A DNA stretch of 64,000 bases from Marsupella aquatica (GCA_973895155.1 OZ316899.1:11407675-11471674), one strand, 5' to 3'; counted from the first letter of the stretch, positions 13,698 through 53,100 are shown. The notes: generated by a model not told the origin, from the letters alone. Program-made: numbers and translations.

Positions 13698-15001
13698 ATG
13701 TCTGCTTCCGATAGTTCCACATCGGATTCAGACTCAGACACGAGCTTGTCTGAGGAGGAGGTTCCTCCACCCCCTCCTCCAGACCAACCTCGTGCTCAGC
13801 CACTAGGGTCCATACCTTGTTGGTGTGTGAGATGTAAGGGACTTGTGGTTCGACATGCCTGGGAGACTTGTGAGCACATCAAAAACTATGGTCGCCACGA
13901 GGGTGATACACCAGGGTATTTGCCTAGCCAGGTAATAAATACGTCCCTCCTTCATTCCATGAAATTCCAATAATTAGTCCACAAATGCTAAATTACTTTA
14001 CATCTAAACAACAATTCATGTATTGATTTGTGTCAAATCATTGTTTGTTGAAATAGGTGCCTCGTAGACCCCCACCTCCTCTGGTTGATAATGCTATGTG
14101 GTTGGAAGGGTTTCTAGCAAGGGCTAGTGAGTTGCTTGCATCTACCCTTGCCCATCCACCTCTTAGTCCCCCTGCTCCTATCCCCACACATGCGCATGTA
14201 GACGAGGATGCACCGGTCTCTCGACCCAAGGAAATGGATACTAGGGTCCTACGTACACGTTCACGGTCTCGCAGACGTAGACGACAATATGAACCGGTGG
14301 AGCAGGTAGAGAATCGGGAGGAGGCGTTACGTAGTGATCGACTAGCCGGAAATGGAGATTATATTTGTGTTGAGGGCCGGTTTGGACTATCTTATCTCAC
14401 TGGTAGGGCTGCTGATGTTTGGAAGGACTTTTCTCCTAGTCTCTTCAAATTTCCAGATTTCATTCATACTGATGAACCAGTTGACATATGGGGTCGGCCT
14501 TGGATAGTGAAGGCATCCTCTATTGGTGCTGATATAGGATATGGTCTATATGCTTTGGAGGACATTGTGGTCCCTCCAAAGCCATGGAGACGTGGATATG
14601 ACGGAGAGCACCTTTTCCCTTACATTGGGGCTGTATATAATGCAAAGAGTTGGAAGACTTTGTTGCGTCAACACCCAAGCTGGGGGGTGTACGCCTTGAG
14701 GATGGACTCAGACCCAGATGAGGTTTTGACTAGGCCGTGGCATTGTAGGATGATTGATGGTGACCCTATTCGGAATGGTAATTTAGCAGGGTACATCAAT
14801 AGTACAACGGGTAGAGGTAGAGATTTTGAGGCTAATGTAGAGTGGATCCAAATTTTTGGCCCTCCTAGAGATCCGTATTTTGTGAAACATATGGATGACC
14901 ATATCATGACAGTAGCCATTAGGACTATTAGAGCCGGTGAGGAGATATTGTGTGAGTATGAGTGGGACGCCCCAAAATTGTCCCTACGTTGCCGTCCATG
15001 A
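13698..15001 (+). CDS. SET-domain protein (two exons: 13698-13931 and 14057-15001) carried by the CACTA element
   Basis: SET motifs IGYGLYALEDI, PYIGAV, IDG...GNLAGYINS and AIRTIRAGEEILCEY. Exon 1 has CWCVRC...HIKNYG, resembling the transposase-associated domain. The phase-0 intron runs GTAATA..AATAG. Confidence 0.8.
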
Positions 15002-16145
15002 TAGTATGTTGAACTTACATGCATGTAAATCTTACATTGAATTAATGAGATTCATGATGATTTATATATATATATATATTGATGATTGTAATGAGATTAA
15101 TGTTAATGAGATTGCATTGATGTTGTATGATAGAATCAATATGTACAATCTGATATTGGGGTCATATTACGAGCTATGCGACAACACATTGTTGAGGCCA
15201 TGGTGGCCAACCATGGGCATGATGGAGGGATGCAGGAGGATGATGTACAACATGAGGGTGATAATCCTACTCAAGCACATCTGGATGAGGAGAGGGCCAT
15301 GGATGAGCTCATGGACAAATTTTATGATGATGATGTTGATATTGGTATGGAGGATATGGGTACAACTAATGACAACACCACTCATCCAGGACCTTCTAGG
15401 GGGGGACAGAACAAGGATTGGGAGGAGGCTCAACGTCATGCTTGTACTCGCATATTTGAGGGTAGCACCTTATCTCGGCTCTCCGCAATAATGTTGTTGC
15501 TGAATGTGCAGCAAAGACATGGGGCCAGCAACCTACTTTTGGATGATGTTTTTCGTACCTTGCATGATCATATTTTGCCACCAGGCAATACCATGCCAAC
15601 CTCTTGGAAGGAGGCAAAACAAGTGTTGAAGTCCATTGGTCTCAAGTATGTAGTGATACATGCATGTGTGAATGATTGCATTCTTTTTAGGGGGGAGCAT
15701 GAGAATGCAACTGCATGTCCTAAGTGTGAGAAGCCACGCTACCGTGATGACATGTTGATAGGGAAGGTGCCTCCAAAGGTTATGCGATACTTTCCTCTCA
15801 TCCCCCGATTGCGACATCAGTACCGTTGTGCAGAGTTAGCTGAGTACATGGTATGGCACTCAAAGAATCATTCTGATATGGCTACGAACTCTAGTGCCAT
15901 GCGGATGATGGTTGACTCTCCTGCCAATCGATTTGTTGAGGGCAGATGGGGGGAGTTCACCACTGAACCACGACATGTTCGACTTGGCTTGGCAGCTGAT
16001 GGTATCAGCCCTTTTGCATTGGTGGGTAAAGCAAAACCATATTCAGTATGGCCAGTAGTTTTGACTAACTACAATATCCCTCCATGGATGGCCATGAAGA
16101 AAGGTCATTTACTGCTCTCCATGATCATCCCAGGTCCTAAGCAAG

Positions 16146-19100
16146 TGTGGCACGGTTCCCAAGTCCTCTAACACCGAGAACTACCCTCAACCGATCATAA
16201 ACCACTTGGTTATGTCGGTCCTCTTTCCTTACGGCAGCTATTTAGCTTGGAAACGCGATACTCTCCTTGGGTCCACACTTACCGGACCGATTCTTTCACT
16301 GGGCTTGTGAATTGTGCACAACTGAGACACCTAATTCCTCTTTAACTTCTTCAGGTATATTTGTATTCTGCCCCCGGAATGTACCTCTACGGCTTAATTT
16401 CTTAAGCCGGCTGAAGGTCTTTTTCAGACTGACTCAACCCACACTTCACCGACTAACACTCTCAATCCTCACTGTTCTCTCAGAGTTTGATTTGGGCAGT
16501 CTCCAATCAAGGCAATGCGATTGTATTTTGCTCAACAGTTCACCCTATCTGACTTTAATCGATCAAGCAACAGATATCATAACACTCAACTTCTTGGATG
16601 GCAAGAATCTGCGAACTATGCAACGAAGCCAACTCAATTCAAACAATTGCTCAGAAATCCAAGGGAACTGGTGGTTTACTGATACCCTGCGGTCTAGATT
16701 TAGCCGAGAGCTTCCTGTGTTTACAACAATACAGATTAACACTAAAGCCTTGACTAAGAAAAAGCCCCTGAAACCATGCTGCCCAGGTTTTTATCCTTGC
16801 AGCGATTTCAAAAACAACAACAGAGATCCTAACCACCACACATGGCCTTCCACCGCGATAATCCAAAAAAAAACTATCACCTAAAAACTTGAATAGCCCG
16901 GAACCCTGTGTGAACCGAGCATCTACTACTATCTAAGCCGACAAGGCGCTACTTGCCCTATCCCATCCTACAACGGCCGCGCCCTTCTGGCCCAAGCCCT
17001 TCTCCTTCCGCCACGTCCTCCTTCCAACCGATGACTGGCCCTCCTTAATTGTCAGATGACCGGGGGTAAGTCTGAATCTTCCGACTCTGCACCTTCTCCT
17101 GCCATCGGCCCCGGCCCGACCCCTTCGGCTTCTGTTTTGCCGGCCCCGGCATCGGTCTCGGCATCGGCATCTGCATCTGCATCCGCATCCTCCTGGGAAA
17201 CGGCTTGGAGAGCCTTTGCCTTAACTTCCTCAATCCAAGCCTTTTCCCTGATGCGCTCGGTCTCGATAACCCACGGTTTCATGTTCTGTGTGTCCATAGA
17301 AGCAGTACCATCGTCTAAACCTGTTACCACAGCTCCAAGTTGATCCGCAGTACTTACCTCTACCACCGCTGCCTTCAGGGCCACAGTACCACAAATGTGA
17401 GCAGCCATGCTCTCGACTTCCTCTGGAGTGGCTTTAAGGGTTTTAACTTTATTATCGCCTGGCCCCATGAACGTCTTTGCTAAGTCTGCCACCAACTGCA
17501 TGGCTTTGCCCCCAGTCACACTTGACAACAGAGAGCTTGGCTTCGGCTTCGGCTTCACTATATTTCCGCCTACCATACTACTGTCGGGAAGCCTTTCAGT
17601 TGGTGACCCATATCCCGCTTCGGCATACTTCTTCAATTTCTGCGTTTGATTGTCGGCACGCCTCTGCAGCCCGATCATCTTATCCTTGGCATCCTCCAAT
17701 TCTTGAGATACGTCTTCAACTTCATCGTTAAACCGTAGTATCTCGGCCTTGGCCGTCTTCAACTCCTCATTTAAGATCTGCACGATCTCCAACTCTTGCT
17801 TAGCTACGGTTGCTTTCAAGGAGTCGTTGATACCTTCCAGTTTTGTGACCTCGTTCGTCCATGCCTGCTTTGTCCTGGTTAGCTCCTCCTGAAGCTCCTT
17901 GCGTATCTGTTGAACCCGGTTTAGGTGATCATTGGCCGCCGTGCACATGGCGTCATCATGCTTTTCACGCATGGTCTCCAACCGGTCGAGTAACTTATCA
18001 TACTTCCTTTGGGCTTCTACCAAGGCCTTTTCGCTCTGGGTGGCCTGCTCCTTAGCCGTCTTTCTGAGCCTCTCAACTTGGCGATTTAAACCCTGTACCT
18101 CTACTTTTGAATCGGCTAACTCCAGCTCTATCTTTGTCAACTTTTCCTTGATCTGCTGGTTATCCAATTGGTAGTTTTCAATTGGTTGTTTGCCACATCC
18201 AATTCCTGCTGCCTAGCCAAGAGATCCTACTGAGTTGGTTGAGAAGACTTCATCTTAGCAACTTTGGCCTCCATGGAGCAAAGCCGAGCAATTACTTCCT
18301 CCTTCAATCGCTCCAATGTCATTGCCTCCTCCAGTCTCGTCTGATCAGCCATTTCTTTTCTAAGAAATGGCCCGGATTCCAACTCGTTGCCGAAGATTTC
18401 TAAGGCTAAGAGTCCACACATGTCTCCATACTCCTTAGCCTGATTTCTTGCATAGTTTGACCTCCCAGGTGATACTGGCATCTGCCATCGAGGTCGTCTC
18501 TCCCAAGCTTCAGCCCGTAATTGGTCAAAGTTAGTGAGAGGTTCGGCTTGCCTCTCACTAAGCCGTCTTATTCCTTCTGGCCACTCACCTCCTGGTAGCT
18601 GGCATCCGTGTTCTGCATTCCGGGCCCCCCACTCCTTAATCTTCTCATGTAGCCCGGCTTCAGCTTCCTTCATCTTGTCGAATTCCAATGGCGTCACATC
18701 TGGTGGAGGAGATTCTGGCATTTTCTGGTCCTCCGGTTTGCCATAGAAGACCGCGGGAAGTCTTCTACAAAACCTTCCCATCGTTCTAACTCCTGGGACC
18801 GGCCTCTCCCCATGATTGACATAGTCGTCGTCATAATCATCCACATTGACCTGACTACCTAACATGCCGGCCTCTCCTCCAAAGCCCCCAATCTCCTCTT
18901 CTGAAAATTGTTGGGCTGCAACTGGTTGACCTTCCACCACAGATTCGTTCACTTGGGCTCTGTTAGAAGCTTTTACAACCGGCCTCTCCTAGCCTTGGCT
19001 TACCTCCTCGTCTATCTTCGAATCCATTCGCTCGTCATATTTCTTTCTCTCTTCGGCAGTCATCTTCCTCTCGACCAACTGGATGCCTGCATATGGATTA

Positions 19101-20760: not shown

Positions 20761-23207
20761 GCAAGTAAAAAAGATTGACATCTACTTGCAACCATTGATT
20801 GATGAGCTTTTGCAACTGTGGAGAGGAGTGGATTGTTATGATGGACGTCGCAATACAAGAGGTGTACCTCGCGCATTTACCCTCAAGGCCATCCTTATGT
20901 GGACCATGCATGACCTACCAGGTATGACCTGATAAACCTTAGCTTATTTCCTTGATGCACTACCTTAAACTTAGTGTGCATTAACCTTATTTCATAATTG
21001 GCTGGTTGTATATGGGCTTGGTACAGGGTTTGGCTATATCTCTGGATTGCAAACATCAGGCTATCAAGCTTGCCCTTCATGCGGACCGGATTTGGAGGGA
21101 GTGGCAAGACGCAAGTCAAGTACTTTGCGTAAGATAGTTTACATTGGTCATACCAAATATCTTCCAGCAGACCATCCTTGGAGGAGTGATCATTTCTTGT
21201 ATGACACTGATGAGGGCCAACCTGATACTCGTCCTCAACCTCAGCGAAAGGATCCAACATATTGGAGAGAGGTATGGGAGAGAGTTCAAGACCCTGATGA
21301 TCCATTACAGTTTCTCCGATGTGGCATGACCCGTTTATCTACATTGTCACAGTTGCCATATTGGTCAAAGATGCCCATTAATCACTTGTTGGATGCGATG
21401 CACATTGAGGGAAATGTGGGGAGATCATTGATCCGTCATCTATATGTGGAGAAGAACCACAACTGGAGAGAAAGTTCTGAGGAGATGGGGATGCATGGTC
21501 TTTTGGGTTTTTGGCCATCTTTGGACCCCCCTGGTGATCCCCCTAGCATCCATCCTCCTTGGGTTTTGACCAGGGCAGAGCGCATAGAGTTTCGCAGATG
21601 GATTGGGTCAATGAGGTTTCCCACAGGTTATGGTGCCAATCTTCGTAAGGCATTTTGGGGGGATGATTCTCCAAAATGGCCATCGTACTTGAAAACACAT
21701 GATTATCATTGGTTACCAGAACATGTCATTCCAGTTGCGATTATTGGATTGGGTAGTGAGGAACTTCGTGATGCTCTTTGGTCATTGGGCAAGTTTTTGA
21801 GATGGGTATGTCAGAAGGAGGTACCAGAGGATGACATTGCTGCGATGGAGATATTTGGAGTAGAGGTTGTTTGCAAGTTGGAGAAGGCACTTCCACCCTC
21901 ATTCTTTGATGGTCAGGTTCATTTCCTCATACATTTAGTGCGTGAGGTAGCAATTGCAGGCCCGGTACATTGTCGATGGATGTATTGGGTAGAGCGTTAC
22001 ATGGGGGTGATGAAGTCATATGTCTCTAATCAGGCTAGGGTGGAAGGTAGCATTGCAGAGCGTCATCTTGGAGCAGAGAGTATGTTTTATTGTACAAACA
22101 TAGTTGCCACACTAGATCCAAGGGCACCTAGGGGATGGATAGATGAGGCAGCACGAGAGGCAGACTATGAGGATGATAGACTCACTGGGGCATCAGGAGA
22201 GCGTGGCTTAGGCTCAGCAGAGCGTTTGCAACTTACAACATTTATGTTGTATAACTCACCAGAGGTTTAGGGGAGTGGACAACATTTTATGAGGAGGAGA
22301 AGCAAAATAGTCGACGGCCACGGTTGTTTCCCAAGTTTCACCCATACATGAAATCAAAGTTGTTAGAAGTGGATGCCTTGGTGGGTACCGGAGACAGTAT
22401 ATTACATTACCCACAAGTGACTGATAAGCTTTGTACCTTGGTTCATGGTCCACTGCTTAAAGTCACGACTCGGACGGCAATGTGGTCAAAGGGGAGACAT
22501 TTCCGTGTGGAACGACTTGATGAGAAGAGAGCAGCTACACAAGATTGTGGGGTGATGGGTTGGTTCACCCAGGATTCCCAGAGTAGCACGTCGGACATGA
22601 ACCCCATTCGCTCCACCGTGGCCCATTATGGGAAGATTGATGAGATCCTGACAGTGAAGTACCATGCACATACTACTTTGGAGGAGGTGGTATTTAAGTG
22701 CAAATGGTTCAAGATGAATCTTGTAGGCAACAATTGAACATGTGAAGATGATGCGTGCGGATTTACCCGTTTGAAGACATCTGCAAATAGTGTCATTAGT
22801 TCCAATTGGAGGTCCTCAGATCCCTTTGCCTTCCCACATCACCTTGAGCAGTGCTTTTACCTACCCTATCCAGATGACCCACATTGGTCCATTGTCATGC
22901 CTTATATCCCTAGATCACGGTCTATAGTCCAAGAGAGACCCAATGTCGTTGTAGTGGAAGACAACGACATCCCCGACCCTCCACAAGCTAGTTAGTATAT
23001 TTTGTATGTAGCTAGGCCCCCCCCAACCACACCACCTTCATGTTTTTTTTAATCGGCAATATAAAAGTTGGCATCATTACTTCTTTAATTGTCATGGTAT
23101 GCACATGCCCAAAATCTCTTGGTTATATATAGAAGTGTCCTTACCTTATATACCCTTCCTAAGAATCCCCCCGCCTTATGTCCCATTGACTGTCCCATGA
23201 AAAAGCC

Positions 23208-27095: not shown

Positions 27096-27988
27096 AGTAG
27101 TGAGTACCCTCTCTCAGTTGCGAGGGCATAACTCTCTGTGTATTTGACCAAATTGGCTATAATTGACCTCTTTGGAAAGAGGAGCTCAAGCCGCTTCCAA
27201 CGCTGCTATCTACACAGCAGATGGTTGAATAGAGAAATCGTGAGAGGAGGCGCAAGCTCGCAAAAACTATGGAGGAGGGCCAAATCCGAAGTACATACTA
27301 GCCAATTCGAGATAGAATAAAGCTGCAAGTTAGGGTTTGGTAGTTAGAATAGTGGTGGCTTTGTTAGAGCTGGGATGGGACTCCAGCAGCGTAGCATCCA
27401 CCCATTTGGGCTCAATGTGAGAGTATATAGAGCAGCCCCCCGGTAGAGGCAAGACCGGGAGGGGGACTTCAGTTGTGTGATCTCACGTAGACTGAGCAGC
27501 AGGGAGGAGCTCTGTGCAAGGAAGGCTAGGCTTGGAAGCTGTGTGTTGGGGTGAGCTTGGTTGTGCTATACTCAGGGAGTGATCAACCACGCTTCACAAC
27601 AACAGTTGGCCAGGTTTGCAAGTTGGATTGTGGCTCTTTCTAGTAGGCAACACAACTGGGTTCTTTTCCCCCGATACAAAGCCTTGGTGATAGGTGATGT
27701 GTTGGTGATTGTAAAATGTGGGGAGGATTTCAATGTGATTTGCGGTGAGCACATTAGGGAGGTTGAGATACTGATTGAGGGGCAGCAGGAGAAGCATTTC
27801 TAGTTTAGTCTGGCAAGGCTACGTGATCCATGGGGAGTCTTGGCCTTTGTCTGGTAGAGAGCACTAAGGGATTTATGGCCAGAGCTGAGCTGGCAGGGCA
27901 AGTGTGAGGCTGGGCCTCATTGTAGTCTCGCCGTTAGGCCTGGTACTAGCTTTTAAGTCGAGTCAACTATGCATGCGTAACTTACCAT

Positions 27989-28339
27989 TGTCATGCCGAG
28001 GGACAATGCCTCTTGTGCACATCGGCATGTCCCTCGCATGCCTGCTAGGTATGTAGTTAGGGCTAGTGTACTACTTGAGTTAGTGTCATGTTCTTGTAGC
28101 GAGTCTGGGCCGTTCTTGAAGCAAAGGTGTTTGTTAGTGTGATGCCTGGACCCGGTCCTACTTAGGGCATGTTTTTCTTTGCCGTTTTTCTTGAATTGCT
28201 GTTGACAGAGCTCAAATAGTGCTCGTCGGTTCCGTTCACGGGATTCACACAGTGATTCATTAGATGCTCCCGGCCGATCTTGGCATCCCGCCGGTTTTCG
28301 ATTCAATTTCAGTACGATTGTTTCTCTTACGCCTTTTAT
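27989..28339 (+). repeat. Terminal repeat A1
   Basis: Direct repeat of 37392-37748. Confidence 0.92.
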
Positions 28340-28351
28340 TCAAGAAGAACT
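28340..28351 (+). other. Putative self-priming primer-binding site
   Basis: ATTCAAGAAGAACT (28338-28351) is the exact reverse complement of AGTTCTTCTTGAAT in repeat A2 (37593-37606). No TGG-type tRNA PBS is present here. Confidence 0.6.
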
Positions 28352-31300
28352 CGTCGAGATAGTGGTGAGGGGAAGAGGATTGCTTGTGACGATTTTGACA
28401 ATTTTTGGTGAAGCCATTGCAATTTCTTTGACGAACATCGGAGTGACGAGTTAAAAGTTATGGGTTTATTGTGGTGTTATGTGTATACTTAAGTGTATAC
28501 ACATAACAAGGGGCCCCAATTTTTTTCCCAGCCGCAACCTTCTTTGTGACCTACATCGGCGACTTGCTGCCGACTGCACAGGCCGTTGCGCCCTCACTCG
28601 CGTTTTTAAGACCCTTTGGGAGTTTGGGGCCCCTTTTTCGTTAGTTTTTATGGCCATTTCCCGGCCATGGCTGTCGCGCGACCACCACCGGACTGCCTCG
28701 GCCATTGCGCGCGACTACTTCCCAACTGCATAGGGCCGCACGCCCCTTTTCTTTATGCCTTTCTTACTCTTTTGCCTCGTTGCCTCACTATTCCTTCTTT
28801 TTGCTTCCTGTCGTGGCCAAGCATAAGCGAGAGAGGATGGAGGACACGAGGCCCTATGGCAAATTAAGAGGAGGGGAGGGGAGTACACATTAAAGTAGGG
28901 GGAGTCTCCTACAGGGCACAAAGCAGCATTAAAGCAGGGGGAGACGGAACCAAGGCAGGAGCGCAAGGAGAGGGCACGAGGCCCTATGAAGATTTAAAGA
29001 GGGAGGGGGAGTTAACATCGACCCCCTTCAGGAGTCCTTCTGTAGGGCACGGAGCCCACTGTCAACATTGAAGAGGGGGGGAGTACACTTGACTCCTCTC
29101 ACGAGAGTCTTTTGCCAGGGCACGAGGCCCAAATTGCATTGAAGGAGAGGAGGGGGGGAGTTTGTAGCCCCTTTTTGGGAGCACATAAGGTGGGGCACGA
29201 AGCCCTATGGAGGGCTCATGCCATTAAGAGGGCCCGGTTTCTTTTGCCCCACCTCGCGATGGCTTTTCTCCTCTTTCCGGCCACCTGCGAGCCTGCCTCG
29301 GCTAATTTCCCCTTTTTTGGCCTTTCTCGCTTTTTTGCCGCGCGACGATCGACCTGCTGCCAGTTCCTGGGTCCACATCGGGCCGATGTGTATACACTTA
29401 AGGGGGGCCCTTTCACGTGTTGTAGGGCCCATTTCTTTCCGTTTGCTCCTACCTTGTTCTCGATTATGTGCATAGGGCACCATGCCGGCCGGTCCTTCCG
29501 TGTTTGGGTCCACATAGGGGCCCGAGGTATACATTTTAGGGCCCTCTTTCACATTTTAGGGGCCCGTTTTCCTCGGATTCTTTTGCGGCCGCTGACATCA
29601 GGTCATCTGCATACGGCTGCAGGTCCGGTGTATACACATCTGACGGTCAATTTGGCATATACATCAACAAACGCACAGGGGGCTAAATTTGCATTTTTAA
29701 GGGTACTTTTTCTCCGACGGTTTTTCAACGGTGATAGTTTTTCTGTGTGTTTACACATTTGCACCTTGTTGGTACATTTGGGATTGCAACACAGTATCTC
29801 AGCAGACGAGCCGGGAGGTAGCAGCACATCGTCACCAACACCCAAGTACCATTTACGGAGTGATCCACGACCATTGGTGCCAATTTCATTGGAGTCTCGG
29901 CAATTTTGACAACGTCCACAGATACCAGCGGCACCCACACCACGCAATCCTTCTGCTCAATTTGGCGGTCACTTCACCACTACTCCAAAGCCTGCTATCA
30001 CTTCATTGCCATTTACCCCTTCTGCATCCATGGTTGTTCCTGCTTCACCGACATACAACATGGACGCCAGCCACTCATCTGGCCGCATTGAACGCTTCAG
30101 CGGGCGGCCAGGCACTGTTTCTTTGCGTGAGTTCAAATCCACTTTCTACACTGTCATTTACGAATTGGAGTTGAAGTATGGCAGCAATTTCACAAATGCT
30201 TTTGCATTTAAACAGCTAGCCAGGTATGTGCACCACGAGGCTTTGGATGTGTATGAGCAGCACTCTCAACGGCTGCTTGTGTCACACAATTGCCTAACCC
30301 TGTCTATGCCACTGCAATTGCGGTTGCCTCACAACTGGCATTACAGAATGCCATTGTAGCCCATGCTGCTGCTCCTGCCACTTCCCCTCCTACTCCAGTT
30401 CCCACCACTGCACCAGTTACTTCCACTGTCTTGGCACAGGCTACATCAGGTATTTCTCCCACCATTGATTCCCCTGCCTTTGCTGATCCAGTGGCTGAGT
30501 TTTCCCAGGTTCTTGAATTGGAATTCCCAATCAAGAGTGCTGACAAAATCATGCAGTTGGCCACCTTTGTGAGGCAGCGTGATGAAACATTGAAGATGAT
30601 GTATTGCCAGCTTCTCAAGCGGAAGGAGGACACCCAGAGCATCACTGACCTGGAGGCTGCTCATCACTATCTTCATGCATTGGAGGGCACACCAGCTCTC
30701 CATTTGCAAGTGTTGCAGCAAGTATTCTTAGAGTTTGGATACAGCTACACACTGCTCAATGTCTATGACACTACTGAGAAACTTGAGTTGGCCCATGCAC
30801 ATTATGAGGCCAGTATTGCGCGTCCATCGCGATCCAGGTACCAGGCTGCTGCCCCTACACTGGCCACTCCTTCCCATGTGCCACAATATGGTTCCAAGAC
30901 CAAGCCAGCACATGCTGCTTTCATGCTGCCATTTTGCAACTATTGTGGTAACCCTAATCACAAGGCTAATGAATGTGATATTGTTGCTGAGGACCTGTCT
31001 TGTGATTTTTGCGGGAAAGTGGGCCACTTGGAGGCAGTTTGTTTTGCCAAATTCCCAGAGAGGAAGCAACTACGTTAGCAGGCCACTCATCCTGCTCTTG
31101 TTTCCACTCCCCCACCAGCTAGGAGGGCTCCTACTGCATCAGTTGCTCCTCCTTCTAGTGGCAAAGCACCCGACGCTAACAAATTGCCCAAGCAGCAACA
31201 GAAGCAACTAGCTCAGAAGGAGGCTCACAACGCACAAGCAACTCAACTCCAGTCTCTGACTCATGAGGTTGAGTCCCTACGTGCCCAACTTGCCAACATC

Positions 31301-32911
31301 AAAGGCAAGTCAACTGCCTCTGTTGGTCCTTCTCAACCGGCTGGTCACGTGCAACCCATCCCTGGCCCAGGCACCACTGATAGTTCAGCACCTCTACCCC
31401 GCTCTTTTTATGGCTTGCCATTTGATGCTCATATGGGTGAGTGTGTGCTATCCTCTGCTACACAGCCTGGCCTTACCGCAGAATTTTCAGATTCATTATG
31501 CCCTTCCTATTTTGCTTACCATCAGGCCAGTGTTGCCTCCCGTACTGCTCCCACATGCCGCATTGTACAGGCTGATGGTCTTGCTGCCGGTCCTATAACT
31601 AGAGCCAGGGGAGCTCGGGCTGTCATGCCCCAATCGTTTCAATCGCTCACACTTGCTGAAGAGCACACCTTGTTGGCGAGGGGGGAGGGAGCTGCAGCTA
31701 CATCCATTCCACCACCAGGTGCTGCTGACATTTCACAGGGAGTTGTTTCTCCTGAGCTGCTTGAGCATTTCACCTCCGGTATGGCACAAAGGATTCTTAC
31801 AACTCCACTTTTCAGTTGCCATGATTTACAACTGGATGCTAGAGCTGTCATGAGAGCGCTAGAGGGCTCACTGCATTCTTCATCAGCCCTTGTGCCACCG
31901 GTTTTGGAGGTCCAATCTCATGTACATGCTGGATCTTCTTCTTCTCCATTACATGCTTCCACTGGTTTGGCTATCCCAGTACCAATTTCTTGTGGTAGAG
32001 ATGACAGTATTGCTGCAGATTGTGTGACCAGAGCTACACTTGATTCTGGTCATGCTGCTCCATCTTTCCTGGCTATGCTGTTGAGTGAGAAGACCGTGGA
32101 CACTAACTCCCTTCACAAGGTACCTCATCATTTGCCAAAAGTGGTGCCTAGTGACAGGACTTTAGTTTCCACCACCATTGCCATTGTTGACAACAGGAAT
32201 TAAGTGGTCAAGTTGGAGGGTCACACTCCTCAGGTGGTCATGCTAGACACAGGCGCTCAACCAGAGATATTGGGCATTCAGTTTGCCAAGAAGATGAGAC
32301 TGCTGATTGATCATTTACAACAATCCAGGTGGCACATTCGGACTGCTAGTGGCACTGTGGAGGATGTGCTGGGTGAGAGTTCTACTTTACTCACTCTCAC
32401 TTTTAATGGAGGTACAGATCAGGAATTGCATTTCCCAGTCAGATATTTGGTTACCAATGCCACTACGTATGATGTGCTCATTGGCCAGGAGGCTTTGTTC
32501 CCACCAGGTTTTACCATTGACAACTGGCATGAGCATGCGTACTACAGAGTTGATTGGCATACGGATGGCTCACACTTGGGCTACATTCCACTTGATTTGC
32601 ATGGTGCCCATACACCTATGGCTCACCACTGTGTGTTGAAAGCAGTGCACACAGCTACCTATGTCAACCACCCATTGCAGGATTGGATTGAGGAGGATGA
32701 TGATGAGGTGGCTACTGCACATGCTGCTGCACGTATAGCAACACTTTCCAGCAACGTGGATCATCAACCAGAGGTGGTACAACGGCTCCAAGCAGCCCAT
32801 GGACCTTTGGTGGCTGCATTGCGCAAATTTGAGGACCTTGGGCAGCACAATGGCCAACCAATAGCCCCAATCTTGAGCGCACCAGTTACATGGACTCCTC
32901 CTTCAAATGGC

Positions 32912-33850
32912 CTTACATTGCTTGAGATTTTTGGTGGCATTTCTATAGGCCTAGAAGCTCTCCTACAGTCTGGCATGGTGGTGAAGCAGTACATCTATGT
33001 GGATATTGATCCAGGTGCAAGGCAAGTGGTTGAATCTCGTCTGCTGGAATTTTCAAAGTGATTTCCCCAGCAGTTTCCACACAGTGCATGGAAGTCTGCA
33101 TTTTCTTTCTTCCCTCCAGATATCCAGCTTGTCTAGCACCGGCACTTAACCCTTCTTGGCTCCCTTGATTTGATCATAGCTGGTTGGGAATGCCAAGGGT
33201 TTTTAGCTGCTGGTCACGGTGCTGGACTGCATGATTCTCGTTATGGCCTTTTCACAACATTGGTTCAGGTTTTCACCTGGGCTCAATCTCTTTAATTACC
33301 CTGCTATTGGTTATATCATTGAGAATACTCCATCTCAATTTGACCAGCGTCCACAGGTCAAAGAGGATTCAGTGTGGTCCAGCACTACTTGGGACCACCC
33401 CTTCTCATTGATGCAGTGCACTGTGGTTCTTATGCACATCGTCTTCGTAAGTTTTGGACTAACCTTGCACCACCTTCCTTGCTGGAGTTAGCTCTTCACC
33501 ACACATCCAGGGACACTAACCTCACAGTGGACCAGATTTTGGATCCTGAAAATTCTTGCCAACCAGTTACACGGCAAGAGCCAGCACCTTGGTATCCAGC
33601 CAATACCATTGGACAGCCCCGTGCTGCTTGGCCTACATTTGTATCATTTCCAGGTGCACATGCCTTTCAGGGTGATGGTCTTGGCCTGGTTTATCAACAT
33701 TCTATCGGTACTTGGGATGAACCTAGTCCTGAGGAGAGAGAACGGGCTATGGGCTTCCAATTTGGTACTACAGGCCACACCCAAATCACCAGGCTGGTCA
33801 GGAATGCTTTACTTGGCAGGGTAATGGATCTTAATGCTCTCACTTGGCTT
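32912..33850 (+). other. C5 cytosine methyltransferase domain, DNMT3-like, within pol
   Basis: Motifs in canonical order: I LLEIFGGISIG; IV DLIIAGWECQGF (33164-33200); VI YIIENT; VIII SYAHRLRKFWTNL; IX EERERAMGF; X RNALLGRVM. Confidence 0.9.
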
Positions 33851-36800
33851 CTGGTCACTTGCATCCTTTTTCAGATGTACATTCATCCAGCATCTGGAGT
33901 TCCAGCTCTACCACTCCATGGTGCTGCTACATGGCATCCAGACCAGGTGCACTTACCTCTATTCAACACTCACCGCTGTAGTCCAAGTGTTGGGGGGGAG
34001 GAGGTCCCTTGTAACGTGGCTGACAATATTTCTGAGTTTCATGGTGTGGACCAACTCAGATCAGCAGGTACAACAGGCCTTGGAGAGGCCTCATCACCTT
34101 ATCAACAACATGCTAGCAGCTTGGACAGTGGAGAGGCTAGCACTTCTGGCTCTTCAAGCACGAGTACATCAGGTCCTATTCCTAGTGTTGCCAACTACAC
34201 ATTCATCATGGGCAACCACCTGAGTAAAAGACAGAAGGACCAGCTGCTGAATTTGCTCCTCAAGCATGAGAACGTGTTTGCTTTCTCTATGAAGGACTTG
34301 GGTAAGTGCAAGACTATGCAGTTCTCCATTGAGTTGGCTAATGAAACACCTATCTTCAGGCGGAGACACCGTTTGAGTAAGCATGAGTGGCAGCTGGTGG
34401 ATGAGAGGTGCCAAGAGCTCTATGAAGCTGCTCTTATTCAGCCATCTACATCAGATTTTGCAGCAGCTACAGTGATGCCAGCAAAGAAGGATTCCAGTGG
34501 ATTATGGACAGAGAAGCGCATGTGTGGGGACTACAGGCCACTGAACCTGGTCACACCCCAGGATAGGTACCCCATGCCACGGCCAGAGGAGCTATTTGAC
34601 AGCATTGGAGACTCAGACATCTTCACTCTTGTGGATCTAAGGCAAGGCTTTAACCAGATTTTGCTGCTTGCAAAGGACCGCAAGAAAACAGCTTTCCATG
34701 GTAGTAACCAACTATGGGAGTGGTTAGTGATGCCATTTGGCTTGAAGAATGCGCCCATATTCTTTCAAAGAGTCATGGACCAGGTTCTTCAAGGTGCTGA
34801 GTTTCTAAAATGCTACATTGATGATGTGTTGGTCCACAACAAAGGATTTGACCAGCATCTACTTGACCTTGAGGAGCTATTCATGAGGCTTAAGAAGGTG
34901 AACCTAAAGATACACCCCAAGAAGTGTGAATATGCTGTCAAATTAGTAGTATACCTTGGGCACCGCATTCTTCCAAATGGAACCATGGCTCACTAGGCCA
35001 AGGTGGTATCCATCTTGGAAATGCCCACTCCTACCGATGTTCACACTTTGAGGAGTTTTATTGGGTTGTGCAATTACTACCGGATCTACATCAAAGATTT
35101 CAGCACCATTGCACACCCATTGTATGCTTTGTTGAAAAAGAATGTGACTTGGACATTGAGTACAGATGCTGAGGCAGCATTTGCCACTTTGAAGGAGAAG
35201 CTCTTAGAATACCCGGTGCTGAGAAGACCTGATTTCAGCAAGGTCTTTGTGCTACACACAGATTAGAGTGCCCTTGGGATTGGTGCCATTTTTGGCCAGC
35301 ATGATGAGGAAGGTAAAGAGTACGTCATTGCCTATGCATCCAGGAGCAACAATCAGGCAGAGAGTCATTATTCTTTGTATGAGGGTGAATGCCTTGCTGT
35401 TGTGTGGGCTATCATACATTACAGGCCTACCTCTATGGGACCAGGTTTGTCCTCTACACCGACCACCAGCCCTTGAAGTGGTTGATGACCAACGACAAAC
35501 TTACTGGCAAGCTTGCTCGTTGGGCGCTCATACTCCAGGAGTATGATTTTGAGGTAATTCATAGGCCTGGTGTGACACATCAAAATGCTGACACTATGTC
35601 CCGCAGCCCTTTGATTGCCTTTGATGATTCCTTAGATGCACGGCAGGATTTTGACCAGGTTTCTATCCTGTCTACATTTCATGCATCTACCTATCTTGCT
35701 TTGCTGCCATGCTACGTTGTTGACCAACCTGTGGTGGACATATGGGAGGACAGCGACACTCTGAGATTTTTGCAGCATGGGGAGTACCCCATACATGTTA
35801 CTGCAACCCAGAGAGACCAAATTCAGCAAAGGTCCAAGCATTACTTGTGGAAGGGAGATCACCTCGTGCGTTGCTTGCCAGACAGGGAAGTGGTGGTTCC
35901 ACCCATTCATGAGAGGGTTGGCCTTATTCGTAAGGTACATTCTGAGCTTGGTCATTTTGGCGTTAAGAGGACTTACAGCCTCTTGGTCCCTCATTATCAT
36001 TGGAGAGGCATGCATGGCCAGGTTTGAGATGTTATTGCCCGGTGTGAACAGTGTGATAGGGTGAGGACTTCTTTCACATCTCGGCAACCCACACTTCATC
36101 CTATTTAGGGCATGTTTTATTGTTGGTCATGTGATTTGGCTGGAGAATTACCCCTCACGTCTTGGGGTAATCTCTACATTTATATCATGATAGAGCATTT
36201 CTCCAAGTGGATAGAACTTGTGGCATTGCCAGATAAGACCTCCCGTAGCACCAGCCAGGCATTCTTGCAACAAGTTCTCAGCCACTTTGGAGCTTGTGCA
36301 GAATGTCTTGCTGACCAGGGCTCAGAGTTTAGAGGAGAGTTCCAGGAGCTGCTTGATCAGGCCCTCATTGATCATCGCCGGACATCACGAGATCACCCAC
36401 AGGCAGATGGCTTGGCAGAGCGCATGGTTCAGACATGCAAGAAGGGCCTCCGAAAGATCTGCCTCACCAAAAACAAGGAGGATTGGGACCTGGCCTTACC
36501 CTACATTGCCATGGATGTCTAGACATGCATCATTGTCTAACTTTTCTCCCTACTTCTTGTTGTTTGGTCATCACCCAGTTCCACCTTTTGCTATTGCTGC
36601 TCACATGCTTCAGGTGGTGGACTTGGATTCAGCTGTGACTTGGTCTGCTGTGATCTCTAAGAGGGCTGCCCTATTCAGGAGGGTTATGCCCATGGCCATG
36701 GAGAATTTGGCCATTGCACAACACAAGGACACATTGCGTTATGCACACACACGAGGGAGCACTTTTCAGTCCAAGGTCAAGAAGTTTGATGTGGAAGATT

Positions 36801-37018
36801 TTGTGTACTTGCAGCGGCAAGCTAACGACACCCTGGACACCTCTACCACTCGTACTATTCTTAGGGTTAAAGCTATTTGACCGTCTGGAGTGCTAGAGTT
36901 ACAAGGGGCAGATGGGCGCACAATTGCTGACAATGCCAAGAATTGCGCCCCTTGTCATCTGCCTAACCTGGATCCCACCATTGTGACTTCTACCTGGATT
37001 CTACCTGTGGACTACCCT

Positions 37019-37153
37019 TGCAAAGTGTGTTTGCAAATTGATGATGCTGACCAGATGCTGCTGTGTGATAATTGCAATGGAGGATACCATCGTTTTTGCC
37101 TTCGGCCTGAACTTACCCAGGTGCCAGAAGGGTTATGGTTTTGCCCTTCCTGT
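37019..37153 (+). other. PHD finger (C4HC3) at the integrase C-terminus
   Basis: CKVC-x9-LLCDNCNGGYHRFCLRPELTQVPEGLWFCPSC. Confidence 0.93.
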
Positions 37154-37203
37154 GCTCCACATGCTACCTGACTTTTCTTCAGCCCTCCTTTTGGCTGTGG
37201 TCT

Positions 37204-37924
37204 GGGGGGGGGGGTACAAAGGTTTACACCTCCACTACGTACATACCACCTCAGTTGCTTTTTCTTGGCACTTGTGAATGTGATTGGACTTTTTCTAAGG
37301 ATGTTGGTTGCTAGCAGCTTGCACATATGCATTGCCGATGACTTGTATGTTTTCGATACACCATGGCTACGATACTATATGTCACGACAGTTTTCATGCT
37401 GAGGGACAGTGCCTCTTGTGCACATCGGCATGTCCCTCGCATGCCCGCTAGGTATGTAGTTAGGGCTAGTGTACTACTTGAGTTAGTGTCATGTTCTTGT
37501 AGCGAGTCTGGGCCATTCTTGAAGCAAAGGTGTTTGTTAGTGTGATGCCTGGACATGGTCCTACTTAGGGCATGTTTTTCTTTGCCATTTTTAGTTCTTC
37601 TTGAATCGCTATTGACAAAGCTCAGACAGTGCTCGTCGGTTCCTACACGGGATTCACACAGTGATTCGTTAGATGCTCCCGGCCGATCTTGGCATCCCGC
37701 TAGTTTTCAATTTGATTTCAGTACGATTGTTTCTCTTACGCCTTTTATATACAGAGGTTTACACCTCCACTACGTACATACCACCTCAGTTGCTTTTTCT
37801 TGACACTTGTGAATGTGATTGGACTTTTTCTAAGGATGTTGGTTGCTAGCAGCTTGCACATATGCATTGCCAATGACTTGTATGTTTTTGATACACTATG
37901 GCTACGATACTATATGTCACGACA
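37204..37924 (+). repeat. Polypurine tract (G11, 37204-37214) followed by repeats B1 (37215-37389), A2 (37392-37748) and B2 (37750-37924)
   Basis: B1 and B2 are near-identical 175-bp copies; A2 matches A1. Confidence 0.92.
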
Positions 37925-38931
37925 CCATTCTGAAATGGAGGTGTGAGTGTCGCGCCCCTAACCCGGGCCTTAAATCCGGTTTAGTTCCATGCGGCGACTT
38001 TGACCACCAGTAGGGGTGAGGGTTTGGGCAAGGAGGTGTGTAGTGGCCTTGATTGACCCTAAGTTGGGCTAAGGCAATATACTTACTGGTATAACACTCA
38101 CGCAACTCGGACTAGTCATAGGTATGTTTGTTTTCCACCGCTGGAATATCCCCACAGTTAGTGACTCGGACTAACTCCCGGCTTGGGGCTTTCAAGCCAT
38201 CGATGCGACAGAACCTTGTGACATGCAATGGGTGGCAATCCCTACCATTAGTCCGCACCCGGTACGTCCCTTGAAATAGCGCCTTTGCCCATACAAAGCA
38301 TACACACAACACCAGTTACTCGCAAAAACATTAGAGGGAAAAGACTATATTTACTCAATGAAGAATTAGTTTACATAGTTGACTCGACTTCTAAGGGGGT
38401 CAGCAGGCCTAACGGCAGTCAATGCCCAGTCTCTACGAGGCCCCACCCCGCACCTGCCCAACAAGCTTGACTCTGGCTCTCACTCCTTGGTGCGCTCTGA
38501 CCCTGCTTAGGCCGGGACTCCCCGTGCCTCGCCTTTCCTTACGCTGAGATAACTAAGCCTTCTCCCCCTTCCCACAGCGAAAGGGGAAGCCTAAATACTA
38601 CATTCGCGGAAAGGAACCGGGGGATACTACCTTCCGGGGTAATGCCTACTGACTAACTACCCTCTGACTAGCCGGCCGCACTCCTCTGACCGGTTGACCG
38701 TTGACGACAAGGGCGCTGACCGGAATGGCATTAGCTAAGTCTACTGACCAAAATCTAGTTGATGGTCTCTATCCTACGTTGGCTGATCCTAACTGATCTG
38801 CTCCTAATTCTTCCTATTGTGCCACTAATTGGCGCCTAGTGACAGCTATTCTGTCGTTACGCCTAACCAGAAGATGCCGCTGACTCAACCACCTTGCACG
38901 GCGCCTGCTTCCTCACTTTGCTAACCACCCC

Positions 38932-45916: not shown

Positions 45917-47727
45917 AATGGCAGCGTTCGCGAATTTTGAAAGGTAGAAATGAGCAAATGGCCCGCAACGCCATCGACTCCGCTCTTATGGAGGTGCCAG
46001 GGTGAGCTTCAAGCGTGAGTGGGCAAGGTCATTCCGGTCGTTGATGATGAGCTAAAGTCGGCGTCTCGGTCCAAGCGTGATTCTTCTAACGGATTCTACT
46101 CCGCCGCCGCCACCGTACTGCGGTCGAGCGTAATAACCCTCTGCCTTAATTCGTAATCATCCGATCCACTAACCTACTCCTAATCTATTCATAATGGCAA
46201 AGATGGCTATTCGTGCTATTCTACGCTACGGCTACGGTCCTAATGACCGTATAAGACCTAATCTACGACCTGCGTTCGGTTAAGTGACACGTTACCCTGT
46301 CACAATGAGATCTGTATGTGCCCCCAAGAACAAAGTGCAGTGAAGGAGGTTGAGTTTGCAAGGCAAGTACGCGATTGGTTTGAGTCCAATCTACCGTCAC
46401 AATCTGGAGTGAGTCGGGCTTAGGTTCAGGATTGAGCTTCCAGGGCAAGCACGGGGCTTGCAGGGCAAGCATGTTGCAATCTGGAGTAGATAGCCTTTGG
46501 GCCTATTGTTTGGATCAAGTGTTCTCAGTGAATTATTGTGCACATCTTTGAATCTAATTGAGTTCTCCTCTCAGGCCTCATTTCTCTCATGGATGTGTGT
46601 GTGTGTGAGGCAATCTGAGTGTATGATGGGACTAGAAGCGCCACTGATAGGTGTATCGGGTGCATTGAAGTGGGTTGGGTGAGGGTTGTCACAACTCTGA
46701 TTGCTGAGAGTGGAATGGCAGAGTGGTGGGGTAATGGCTTAGAAGTCCCTAAGCCGGGAATCAATAAGGAGTCACTAGTTTATGGGTACATTCCGGCGGC
46801 GGAATAGAAATATACCTATGACAGTAAGCATACATATAGACATATGCAAACCATAGCGCTAGGCCCTGTGTGTACGGGCCCGATATGAAGACCCCTTCTC
46901 ACCAGAACTATCATGAGCACAGGATTTGATTCCCAACCTTGATTCCTAAGGATTGAGCTTGGGTGATGTGTGACAAAGTCTTGCTATGATAGTCTGGTTA
47001 AGGGCATAAGCGGGTGTTTACCGGCCTTCACAACATCCCTTCGTGATCCTCAGGTACAAGGAGATGGTTTTGGCACCCAATAGTGATGTTTTCGATGTTA
47101 AGACCCATGTCATCGTGTGACAATAGGAGAGTAGTTTTTCTCAGTTGCAAATAGCTGACGGCTAGCAAAATAGATGGGGTGATCACAATCGTCATCGTCC
47201 AGCTGGCTCAGGACGGACCCGATGCAAAACCCTGAGACATCAACATACACATGGAATTCTTTATTCCAATCCTGGGTTACCATGATGGGTTTTGTGGTGA
47301 GTCGATGCCTGAGCTCCTCGAAGGCTATGCGCCTTCGGGGTGTTTCTTCAATTATTGCGTCCTTCTTCATCATCTCCGTTAGTGGTAGCGCGACTTTTGC
47401 AAAGTCTTTGATAAAGCGGCGACAGTAGCCTACACAGCCAAGGAACGATCGTACGGCTTTTTGATTGATGGGGAACACCACCGTCATCCTGTCAGATGCC
47501 TAACAAACATAATTACATGGGAATTATGTAAATATGGGTAAAAGTTTTGTTTTGTGTACAATTTGTATCAATTAGTTATTTAGTGTACAAAACTAATATC
47601 AATAAATGTATTGATTCTAGAAAAATATTGACTAGGGAAGATAAGTTATAGTTGAAGGTCAATAGAAAAAATAAGTATCATCTAAGTAGTGGTGGTAGGT
47701 GTCAACTAATGAGTGATCAAATAAATC

Positions 47728-50111: not shown

Positions 50112-53100
50112 TTGTGTATGGGATGCTGTCAAGAGGGCCACATGCTGGGACAGTGTCCTACTTGGTTGGTAGGATTGGCCGCTAATCAAAAACTCTTGCC
50201 GATGAAGGTCCTGCCACTGGGCACAACACCAGGTGGAGTTCATATCAATTACATTGAGTTGGGATGGCAGACAGATGCCAAGGCTGAGTTTGGACCATCT
50301 GATGACAAGGCTGAGGCCTTATCAATATTCTCAGAAGAGGAACTAGACCACAACTGCTACCGGGTTTCTACTCGTTCAACAAGGAAGGAAAGGTGGGATG
50401 GTTTGGCCAAGAACAAGGGGAAGACCAAGGAGGAAGGGGTCGACTCTCCATCTTCATCACCAAGGAGAAGGAAAGGTTCCGGCAACTTAGGTAAGCCCTG
50501 AGCCCAACCCTTCACAAGATAGTGATTTCAACCGAGATCACCCCAAGCTATTGTACCCGTCCATTACGGCTAGTGTTAAGGAACAACTTTGGGAATTGGA
50601 GACACTAGAGAATACTGAAGCTATAGCCAAGGATGTCAAGAGGGCCAAAGCGTTGTTTGCTTCAGAAAAACCAACGTCCGTGGAACCTAGTGTTCAACAA
50701 CAAGCAAAAGAGTGGTGGATCTTGCCACCCAGCACCGTCACCAATCCCAACACTCACGCCTAAGTGCCCCTGGTGCCCGAACGCCTCCACAAAATTCCTC
50801 GAGCAAGCAACCTAGTGCCCCTTGCACCACCAGCGGCCCCTCCCATACAAAGCTGCACTTGCTCTCCAACACAACGCTACTCAATGGTCCTCATTGTCTG
50901 CACAAGCAACCAAGCCCCTCGGTAAGTAACCCTTCAAGATCTAGAACTCGCCAAGTCTAGCATCCTAACTCAAGCTCAACAGACATTGGTAAATAGGTCA
51001 GCGATAAGTCCTCCCGATGCCATAAGCCGGAACCAGAACCCACGCCCACTATTTGTCCATAACAGCTCCTTCCTTGGGCGTGGCCCGGGTTCCCCCTTGT
51101 ACCTATCCATCACCAACTGACCGCCCTGACCCCATGACATGCTCATGGCCCAAATAGCGTAGCTTGTCCTAAAGCTTGTCCCAACACGTCGGGACCAGAA
51201 TGGCCCCGACTCTAGCAACCAACTCCAGGTTTGCCCCATTGATGGTCTAATGGCCGAGCACCCTTGGAACTCAACCTCCATGCTTACTGGCCTTGCCTCC
51301 CAACTCAAGCTCCCTTGGGAGACTGAACGCGGCTTGACTGCTGTTTGACAGGATTTGGCAAGCGGGCGAGCTAACACCCCCAAACCTCAAGGACCCATGG
51401 CTCCCAAGACCCAGTTGAGCTCAGGAGGATGTAGCCCTTCTAAAGATCTTTCCAACGCACCCAAGAAGTCCTCCAATGGACTTCCCACTGGGAAGATATC
51501 GCCATTTTTGTTTGGTGCTTTCCCTTAGTGTCGCGACCATCACGGCTCACAACTTTGGCTCACCCTTGGCTCCCAGGGAGACACCCCTCCCCTCATATAT
51601 GCTTCTGGAGACCTGCCACCCCCAGACCAAATTTGGTCCCTAAACATTTGGCCCCCAACCCGGATGCTATCACGCATAGTGGGCGCGCCACCTACTGGCA
51701 ACGCCCATAACTTTCTTGTTAGGCGTCCGCAAGTGGAGTACCTTAGCCCGTTATGATTGGGCCAACACAGTGCTCATGCCTAGGCCCTCAGGTCTCATTG
51801 CCGCTTGGGGTCTTCGATCGGCCAAACCCAAATCGGGCCATAACTCATCTTACGGGCAGAGTAGCAAGATGGATACTGGTATTACAGGAATTTGACTACA
51901 AGTTAAAATTCAAGCCGAGAAAACTGTGCATGCCAATGCCGACTTCTTTTCAAGAATTTCAGGTGAACCAGCTACGGACTGCATCGACGATCGATTTCCA
52001 AACGAATAGCTATTCATAGTGGAAGTAACGGATACCTGGTACCCTGACATATTATGATTTCTCAGCACATCAAGGTTAGAAGCAAGGGTAAGTAGGGAAC
52101 AAGCCGCAGTTTTTTTATGAAAGGTCAGGCAGTATCAGTGCATTAAAGGCATCTTACACAGGCATGGAGTCAATGGGAAAATTCAAAGGTGTTTGGAATA
52201 GGGCGAAGTGAAGCGGGTCTTAGAAGCTATGCATGGAGACAAAGCCAAGGGATTTTGCACCAGTAACCATGTCTAAAAAGATTTTAGATGCCAACTATTG
52301 GTGGCCAACCTTACACAAGGATGTACACTAGTTCATCAAGCAATGTGATCCTTGCCAGAGAGCAGGAGGGCCAAGGGCGGCCACTAGACATCCACTACAC
52401 CCCATTCTACCTCTTGCACCATTCAAGAAGTGGGGTATTGATTACATTGGGCCCTTGAAACCCTTAACTCATCCTTGAAGAAACAAATACATCATCTTGG
52501 CTACAGATTATGCGACTAAGTGGGTGGAAGCCAGGCCAACGATGAAGGACGACGCGGTCACCACGGCTTGGTTTATGTATGAGCAAATCTTTACAAGGTA
52601 TGGAGCACCCCTAGAATTAGTAAGTGATAGGGGAACTCATTTCTTGAATGATATAGTCAGCCGTTTAAATGAGCAATACCTAGTACGTCATCGGCCTACC
52701 ACCCCTTATCACCCAAAGGCAAATGGGCTAACCGAACAAGCGTATGGCATCATTGGTAAGATCTTAAACAAAATAGTGGCCCAAAACAAAATTGATTGTT
52801 GTCTTTGCTTACTACAAGTCCACCACCGGCCATACACCCTTCTTTTTAACTTTTGGACAAGAAGCTTTAGTACCCATACAACTTGAGATTCCTACATTTC
52901 AGGTTTCAATTAAGGGGAGAGGTCGTTAGAGGAAGAAAGCTTAATAGAGCGAGAATATAAATTAGAGGCCTTAGAAGAGGAAAGAATGATTTCAGCAGAA
53001 AGAGTAGAACATAGACAAAATTCCATGAAGCAACAATATGACAAAAGGTTGAAACCAATTAGTATTCAGACCGGAGACCTAGTATTACTCTATGACAGTA

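Follow-up and report, generated by a model that had tools for sequence, protein, structure and literature searches.

PAT and Ngaro retroelements are defined by split direct repeats, with a block A1 before the genes and the blocks B1, A2 and B2 behind them (PMC4157794). They encode a tyrosine recombinase and no DDE integrase, and some members of the DIRS group also carry a methyltransferase. We know of no PAT or Ngaro element with TG..CA ends or with target duplications. The element described here occupies positions 27989-37924, plus strand, of a 64,000-nt stretch of Marsupella aquatica DNA (hereafter the window, to which coordinates refer unless a locus is named). It has the same A1-genes-B1-A2-B2 order, but it encodes a DDE integrase, ends in TG..CA and is flanked by a 4-bp target duplication.

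In Klebsormidium nitens the element KnitGypsy-Dnmt3 unites repeats of the DIRS type with domains of the Gypsy type, as the legend of Fig. 4c states (de Mendoza et al. 2018, PMC5890265). Its termini, primer sites, any target duplication and a mechanism are not given in that paper, which places the family in the K. nitens lineage. Compared by description only, the two elements agree in a Gypsy-order Pol with an internal Dnmt3-like methyltransferase and in A-coding-B-A-B repeats; unlike KnitGypsy-Dnmt3 as published, the family studied here also occurs in Closterium, in a liverwort and in moss-derived contigs. No K. nitens protein or locus was returned among the relatives of the reverse transcriptase (RT) piece that we searched. 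The initial annotation of the window had regarded its proposed route of integration as new for Gypsy elements. The layout is in fact already published (2018), and the legend cited above is the only description of it that we found; the searchable literature yielded no description of a mechanism for an A-genes-B-A-B layout. We found no earlier account of how widely the family occurs, of its target duplications, self-priming and internal palindrome, or of the route proposed below.

In the Ty3/Gypsy elements Tf1/sushi and Tcn1, the 5' end of the transcript pairs next to U5 and primes reverse transcription (PMC6317226). The likeness to the window element lies in this priming arrangement. Tf1/sushi and Tcn1 integrate with conventional paired long terminal repeats (LTRs) and carry a chromodomain, whereas the window family has a PHD finger. 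The 2-LTR circles of HIV-1 and foamy virus are cleaved by the integrase at their palindromic junction, and they can serve as a source of DNA for integration (PMC1905944, PMC1180852, PMC4372172). What these viruses would share with our element is an integrase cut at an internal CA-spacer-TG palindrome that leaves ends fit for integration. In retroviruses, however, the palindrome arises where U5 and U3 meet end to end (U5|U3), this reaction is a side path, and the provirus keeps an unpermuted order; in the window family the palindrome lies inside the LTR, has a 2-nt spacer, and the route appears to be obligatory.

How does an element with a Gypsy-type integrase come to carry the repeats of a tyrosine-recombinase element? 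The window element is Gypsy-like in its enzymes and target duplication, Tf1-like in its priming and PAT/Ngaro-like in its repeat layout. We put at roughly two in three (about 0.65) the probability that its integrase cuts a palindrome within the LTR on the primer-binding-site side, the provirus being a permuted form of the cDNA.

A shared layout with independent target duplications

A repeat scan, self-BLAST and direct reading gave the order A1, genes, G run, B1, GT, A2, B2, with the following parts.

27985-27988, plus strand: left copy of the target duplication, CCAT, identical to 37925-37928 (direct reading)
27989-28339, plus strand: A1, the left terminal repeat, starting TGTCATG and equal to the 3' part of the reverse-transcription LTR, that is the end of U3, R and U5 (repeat scan, self-BLAST)
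28183-28196, plus strand: decayed A1 copy of the self-primer sequence, the equivalent of A2 37593-37606, and predicted transcript start
28340-28351, plus strand: primer-binding site for self-priming, whose duplex adds the last two bases of A1 (28338-28351; complementarity)
37204-37214, plus strand: polypurine tract of 11 G, the plus-strand primer, directly abutting B1 (direct reading)
37215-37389, plus strand: B1, the 5' part of the reverse-transcription LTR (start of U3), ending CACGACA (repeat scan, self-BLAST)
37383-37398, plus strand: internal att-like palindrome CACGACA-GT-TTTCATG, a decayed form of the family's ...GACA-GC-TGTC... (direct reading)
37390-37391, plus strand: spacer GT between B1 and A2 (direct reading)
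37392-37748, plus strand: A2, with an intact self-primer sequence at 37593-37606 (repeat scan, self-BLAST, complementarity)
37749-37924, plus strand: B2, the right terminal repeat; its joint with A2 at 37748/37749 brings together the U5 end and the U3 start (start of B2 at 37749/50)
37925-37928, plus strand: right copy of the target duplication, CCAT (direct reading)

A1 and A2 are 92% identical over 356 aligned positions including gaps, with 5.5% substitutions and small indels, and B1 and B2 are 97% identical (repeat scan, self-BLAST); the same methods detected no further copy of A or B in the 64-kb window. The ends of the element, TGTCATG and CACGACA, match in inverted orientation at six of seven positions. 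The internal junction reads GACA-GT-TTTCATG (37386-37398) and the A2/B2 joint TTTTAT-A-TACA, the extra A of which most likely opens B, since copies of the moss family show ATACA after the G run, where the B1 of the window has G.

Is this arrangement peculiar to one locus? Relatives of the RT piece that have a C5 methyltransferase domain just upstream of RT came from Calypogeia fissa, Closterium, Sphagnum and many JGI contigs. Metagenome contigs were scanned with P0001, a protein of an intact relative, and the resulting 80 loci, all from moss-type samples (a PPR-DYW gene adjoins one of them), were then subjected to self-BLAST and mapping of A and B. Besides the window, 12 independent moss-metagenome insertions display the complete A-genes-B-A-B structure, and nine more such loci have the B-A-B right end. 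A young copy of Calypogeia fissa (L083) is likewise complete, its B1 and B2 being 100% and its A1 and A2 97% identical, and the B-A-B right end is present in two Closterium copies (L084 and L086). No A1 was detectable in L002 and L086, and the Sphagnum locus (L085) offered no usable repeats. Across the family copies B measures 85-250 bp and is always shorter than A, which measures 290-680 bp.

The initial annotation had expected other copies to share the A..BAB ends, each with a duplication of its own, rather than to have conventional paired LTRs. This is what the copies show. None of those mapped has B-A at both ends, and of the loci whose left end can be seen, at least 30, none starts with A-B-A. 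In place of the paired full LTRs of an LTR element, the left end carries only A, and there is a single full B-NN-A unit, behind which another B stands. A-genes-B-A-B is a trait of the family and not a rearrangement. The single copy in the window would by itself suit a one-off rearrangement, a nested insertion or an assembly artefact of a conventional LTR element; more than 20 copies with the same layout, ends and duplications, in several genomes that include a chromosome-scale liverwort assembly, leave that explanation next to no probability.

Perfect 4-bp duplications of unrelated sequence flank 15 of the 23 sites judged; three of four bases match at five more, and three sites have none. The window (CCAT) is joined by 14 further independent sites with the same arrangement and a perfect duplication, and since a match is expected by chance at one site in 256, such recurrence excludes chance. 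The imperfect duplications fit copies whose repeats have diverged by 5-20%. Throughout the family copies the termini are TGTCATG..CACGACA. We also considered a 5-bp duplication with the element starting at G, as T follows the right-hand copy at 8 of 13 sites, and rejected it; 4 bp and TG..CA ends were retained because T is likewise the base with which A2 begins at the internal junction, and it agrees with the inverted end.

The enzyme that goes with this duplication is a DDE integrase, as had been supposed from the start. Its catalytic D, D and E are kept in the window (CDLAG, ADQGSEF and LAER in the alignment), and the integrase core of a relative, L001, matches the integrases of Ty3 and of prototype foamy virus (PFV). 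A search with Pfam returned no match to Phage_integrase, the tyrosine recombinase domain, in any piece on either strand of the window, nor in L001. The element combines the DDE integrase, the short target duplication and the TG..CA ends by which Ty3/Gypsy elements are recognized.

Shorter forms exist as well. At least eight independent moss-metagenome loci hold A-genes-B, five of them with perfect 4-bp duplications. Could A-genes-B be the primary product, formed when both LTR palindromes of a linear cDNA are cut, to which A2-B2 was added later by recombination or a second event? Cutting both sites would be mechanistically simple, but four observations make this proposal quite improbable. One and the same insertion site is occupied by B-A-B in L062 and by a single B in L011, with flanks that are 97% identical and an element interior that is only 92% identical; the short form there is therefore secondary to the long form, or an assembly collapse. 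The duplication flanks the entire A..BAB unit, B1 and A2 are separated by a constant dinucleotide of the family and not by target DNA, and A-genes-B lacks the 3' R required for the next cycle.

Solo A|B units, which had been suggested as something to look for, proved rare: one was found (L061:14043-14500, minus strand), with its own 4-bp duplication ACCA, just upstream of the B1 of another copy. Its existence lends something to the idea that homologous recombination brings a cDNA or a 1-LTR circle into a solo A|B unit already in place, in which case a crossover within A would yield exactly A-genes-B-A-B. A solo unit would then be needed at each site, yet they are rare here, and crossovers within B would give A-B-A-genes-B, which was never seen. 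We assign this explanation a very small probability.

Three further observations concern single loci. L037 was examined as a distinct A..BAB family and dropped, being better explained by gag-region homology between two adjacent copies. In a Marchantia polymorpha locus (L087, 15481-17493), a 1012-bp unit stands exactly twice, head to tail, after a Pol that belongs to a distant Gypsy element (32% identity, no methyltransferase match); no upstream copy of the unit was found. When L083:2600-3275 is compared with L083:13146-13821, 15 of the 21 differences between A1 and A2 are T or A in A1 versus C or G in A2, with B1 equal to B2; the 5' repeat of this copy seems to decay faster through C>T changes.

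Self-priming, the internal palindrome and the A|B joint

In every related copy a G run or a purine-rich run abuts B1, and the primer-binding site always abuts A1. From the self-primer site and the purine run before B1 it follows that the repeat formed in reverse transcription is B-NN-A, as the initial annotation had concluded for the window, and that its outer ends are not TG..CA. The position of the primer site was also correctly given; its nature needs amending. No complement starting with TGG, as expected of a tRNA-type primer site, lies next to A1, and self-priming fits instead.

The pairing involved is extensive. In the window, 28338-28351 is perfectly complementary over 14 nt to 37593-37606 in A2; the copy of the self-primer in A1 (28183-28196) differs from that in A2 at the first and fifth base, and 9 nt still match the primer site exactly. 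Throughout the family a stretch inside A pairs perfectly, over 14-16 nt, with the last 2-3 bases of A and the next 12. The paired sequences differ among three families (window, moss and Calypogeia) and the pairing is kept, by compensatory changes; in L024, too, a change on one side is matched by a change on the other. When the predicted leader is folded as RNA, the minimum-energy and centroid structures are both closed by the self-priming helix (z = -5.6 and -4.6). These features argue for Tf1-like priming by the transcript's own 5' end, with the transcript start placed by prediction. The leader between primer site and gag also contains repeats 130-146 nt apart (28841-29541; starts at 28841, 28971 and 29117, and at 29368 and 29505).

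Across the family the B1/A2 junction reads ...CACGACA, two bases, TGTCATG..., and the integrated ends correspond to this internal B/A junction, as proposed initially from the window copy. The young copies of Calypogeia and Closterium have GC as their spacer, as do several moss copies, giving a palindrome around CAGCTG that in the Closterium copy L084 is perfect over 16 bp. Older copies mostly have AC, GT or AT, and TA in one, with GATA or TATC often adjoining. With the exception of the TA spacer, all these departures can be read as C>T or G>A at CHG sites in the palindrome, and the variation of spacer and neighbouring bases probably reflects decay after insertion. The spacers AC, GT and AT were also considered as a record of earlier target sites; this was rejected, given GC in the young copies and mostly C>T or G>A changes from CAGCTG in the others.

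The A2|B2 joint consists of the tail of A1 and the head of B1, with no indel in the window. All six indels in 14 alignments fall at this joint, and copies that show only B-A-B add further variants; the boundaries of A1 with the primer site and of the G run with B1 have no indels in related copies. A joint made of A1 tail and B1 head, with indels there alone, points to two cDNA termini joined end to end. To this extent the initial view of A2/B2 as a circle junction holds: the joint is one of cDNA end to cDNA end. A closed 2-LTR circle may or may not have been involved; the A-B-A-genes-B form that a symmetric circle predicts is absent among the at least 30 loci mentioned above. In 9 of 13 copies, the window included, A1 and A2 of the same copy are mutual nearest relatives, as should be the case when a single template serves for both in every cycle.

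Might the element instead follow a cycle of the DIRS/Ngaro kind without the recombinase? An RNA would then run from A1 to B2, the B1-A2 junction would act as a splint, A2|B2 would simply be inherited, and the integrase would insert the restored linear or circular DNA. Such a cycle would account naturally for the layout, the one by which PAT and Ngaro elements are defined, and for its exclusive A-genes-B-A-B orientation, and the size of the joint variant is indeed common to two pairs of nearest relatives. It would, however, leave as a coincidence that the joint is exactly that of the plus-strand-primer and self-primer boundaries; A1 and A2 cluster by copy and not by position, and the two -2 joints differ from each other in sequence. 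We regard it as unlikely.

A proposed route of integration

We return to the reading that we favor, in which the integrase cuts the palindrome inside one LTR. Transcription would start inside A1 and end in A2. The 5' end of the transcript would fold back on the site after A1 and prime the minus strand, as in Tf1, and the G run before B1 would prime the plus strand. The cDNA made in this way would have B-GC-A at both ends, and its outer ends would not be TG..CA. These outer ends would remain unused: the integrase would nick ...GACA/GC/TGTC... inside the repeat on the primer-binding-site side, after CA on each strand, producing recessed CA ends with a two-base overhang, and the new CA ends would be inserted with a 4-bp stagger. 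The original termini of the cDNA would be joined as A|B, either before integration, in a 2-LTR circle, or after it, by host repair. The product would be A-genes-B-GC-A-B between two copies of the target duplication. The integrated copies show directly how the repeats are laid out and how general this is, and likewise the duplications, palindrome and primer sites and the absence of any different arrangement; from them we infer that the integrase cuts, that the termini are joined and that one repeat is chosen.

Several points weigh against this route. The evidence comes from integrated and mostly old copies, not from intermediates, mapped transcript ends or enzyme assays. The palindrome of the window copy is itself decayed, with its GT spacer and TTTCATG. 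Variants of the A2|B2 joint are partly common to nearest relatives (L078 and L033 are both -1), and the joint is AT-rich, so part of its variation may be lineage-specific or due to slippage after insertion and not to fresh imprecise joining. A symmetric circle with two identical cut sites should produce A-B-A-genes-B as commonly as A-genes-B-A-B, and none was found. The route would thus need an extra rule to account for its one-sidedness, such as commitment to the LTR completed first or to the cut site nearest a free end. Two possible causes can be named: the plus-strand jump would be followed quickly by completion of the left repeat and only much later by that of the right, and B being shorter than A would place the left cut site nearer a free end.

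Does the proposal extend to the whole lineage? We see an even chance that an ancient Ty3/Gypsy lineage, ranging from Closterium to liverworts and mosses, depends on obligatory cleavage of a 2-nt-spaced palindrome in the first-completed LTR, with end-joining of the termini and a fixed circular permutation as the outcome.

Coding region, surroundings and significance

The coding part is one frame, interrupted by several stops and a few frameshifts, and the broken open reading frames (ORFs) were searched with Pfam as separate pieces.

30257-31075, plus strand: gag piece with a CCHC zinc knuckle, the frame closing at a stop (Pfam zf-CCHC, below the curated cut-off; homologous to gag ORFs of the relative L001)
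32204-32497, plus strand: aspartic protease (Pfam gag-asp_proteas, below the curated cut-off)
32975-34507, plus strand: stop-interrupted region homologous to a C5 cytosine methyltransferase (Dnmt3-like) block (tblastn with P0001)
34508-34969, plus strand: reverse transcriptase (Pfam RVT_1, E=2e-26)
35162-35544, plus strand: RNase H in three pieces, with two stops and one frameshift (Pfam RT_RNaseH, RT_RNaseH_2)
35902-36399, plus strand: integrase, with an H2C2 zinc-binding domain and the DDE catalytic core (Pfam Integrase_H2C2, rve)
37019-37153, plus strand: PHD finger at the integrase C-terminus (Pfam PHD, E=1e-12)

The order protease-RT-RNase H-integrase with gag upstream was recovered with Pfam in the window and is the same in L001 and L083; the closest named RT is that of Calypogeia, at 84% identity. 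In intact relatives a methyltransferase block sits between protease and RT. Pfam detected no methyltransferase domain in the window copy itself. Residues 1-811 of P0001, which has PF00145 at residues 39-125, align to window 32975-35440 with 70% identity (tblastn); because the region upstream of RT aligns in this way, the window carries a homologous methyltransferase region, now broken. The PHD finger occupies the position where chromoviruses have a chromodomain. The window element is a dead, non-functional member of an old streptophyte Ty3/Gypsy lineage.

An imperfect inverted repeat of about 42 nt (27930-27971 and 38374-38418) encloses the element, its arms lying 17 nt before and about 450 nt after the insertion, and the element may have landed in a unit resembling a miniature inverted-repeat transposable element (MITE). 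Elsewhere the window contains a SET-domain ORF (14057-15001), pieces of a CACTA-type transposase (tnp2, DUF4218; 15176-16171 and 21047-22270), and further RT and integrase fragments at 47128-47472 (minus strand) and 52422-52850 (plus strand). The CACTA transposase, together with the Calypogeia RT as closest named match, gives the window a plant-like character. A second, unrelated Ty3/Gypsy element at 59214-63320 has an unbroken ORF of 1368 aa for gag-RT-RNase H-integrase.

What does the family mean for the way such elements are recognized and classified? LTR finders that expect paired LTRs with primer site and polypurine tract just inside would mis-call or miss them, as the initial annotation had warned, and dating by LTR divergence would mislead, since the rates of decay differ between A and B. 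Since split direct repeats can arise with a DDE integrase, repeat layout alone is unfit for classifying elements. The presence of a DNA methyltransferase and a PHD finger in the family makes its interaction with host silencing of separate interest. The family also offers a natural system in which a retroviral-type integrase apparently acts on an internal palindrome and not on DNA ends, a reaction known in retroviruses only as a side reaction. If the proposed route is true, it would be a natural and obligatory version of the long-abandoned 'circle-junction' route of retroviruses, and it would represent an independent origin of split direct repeats.

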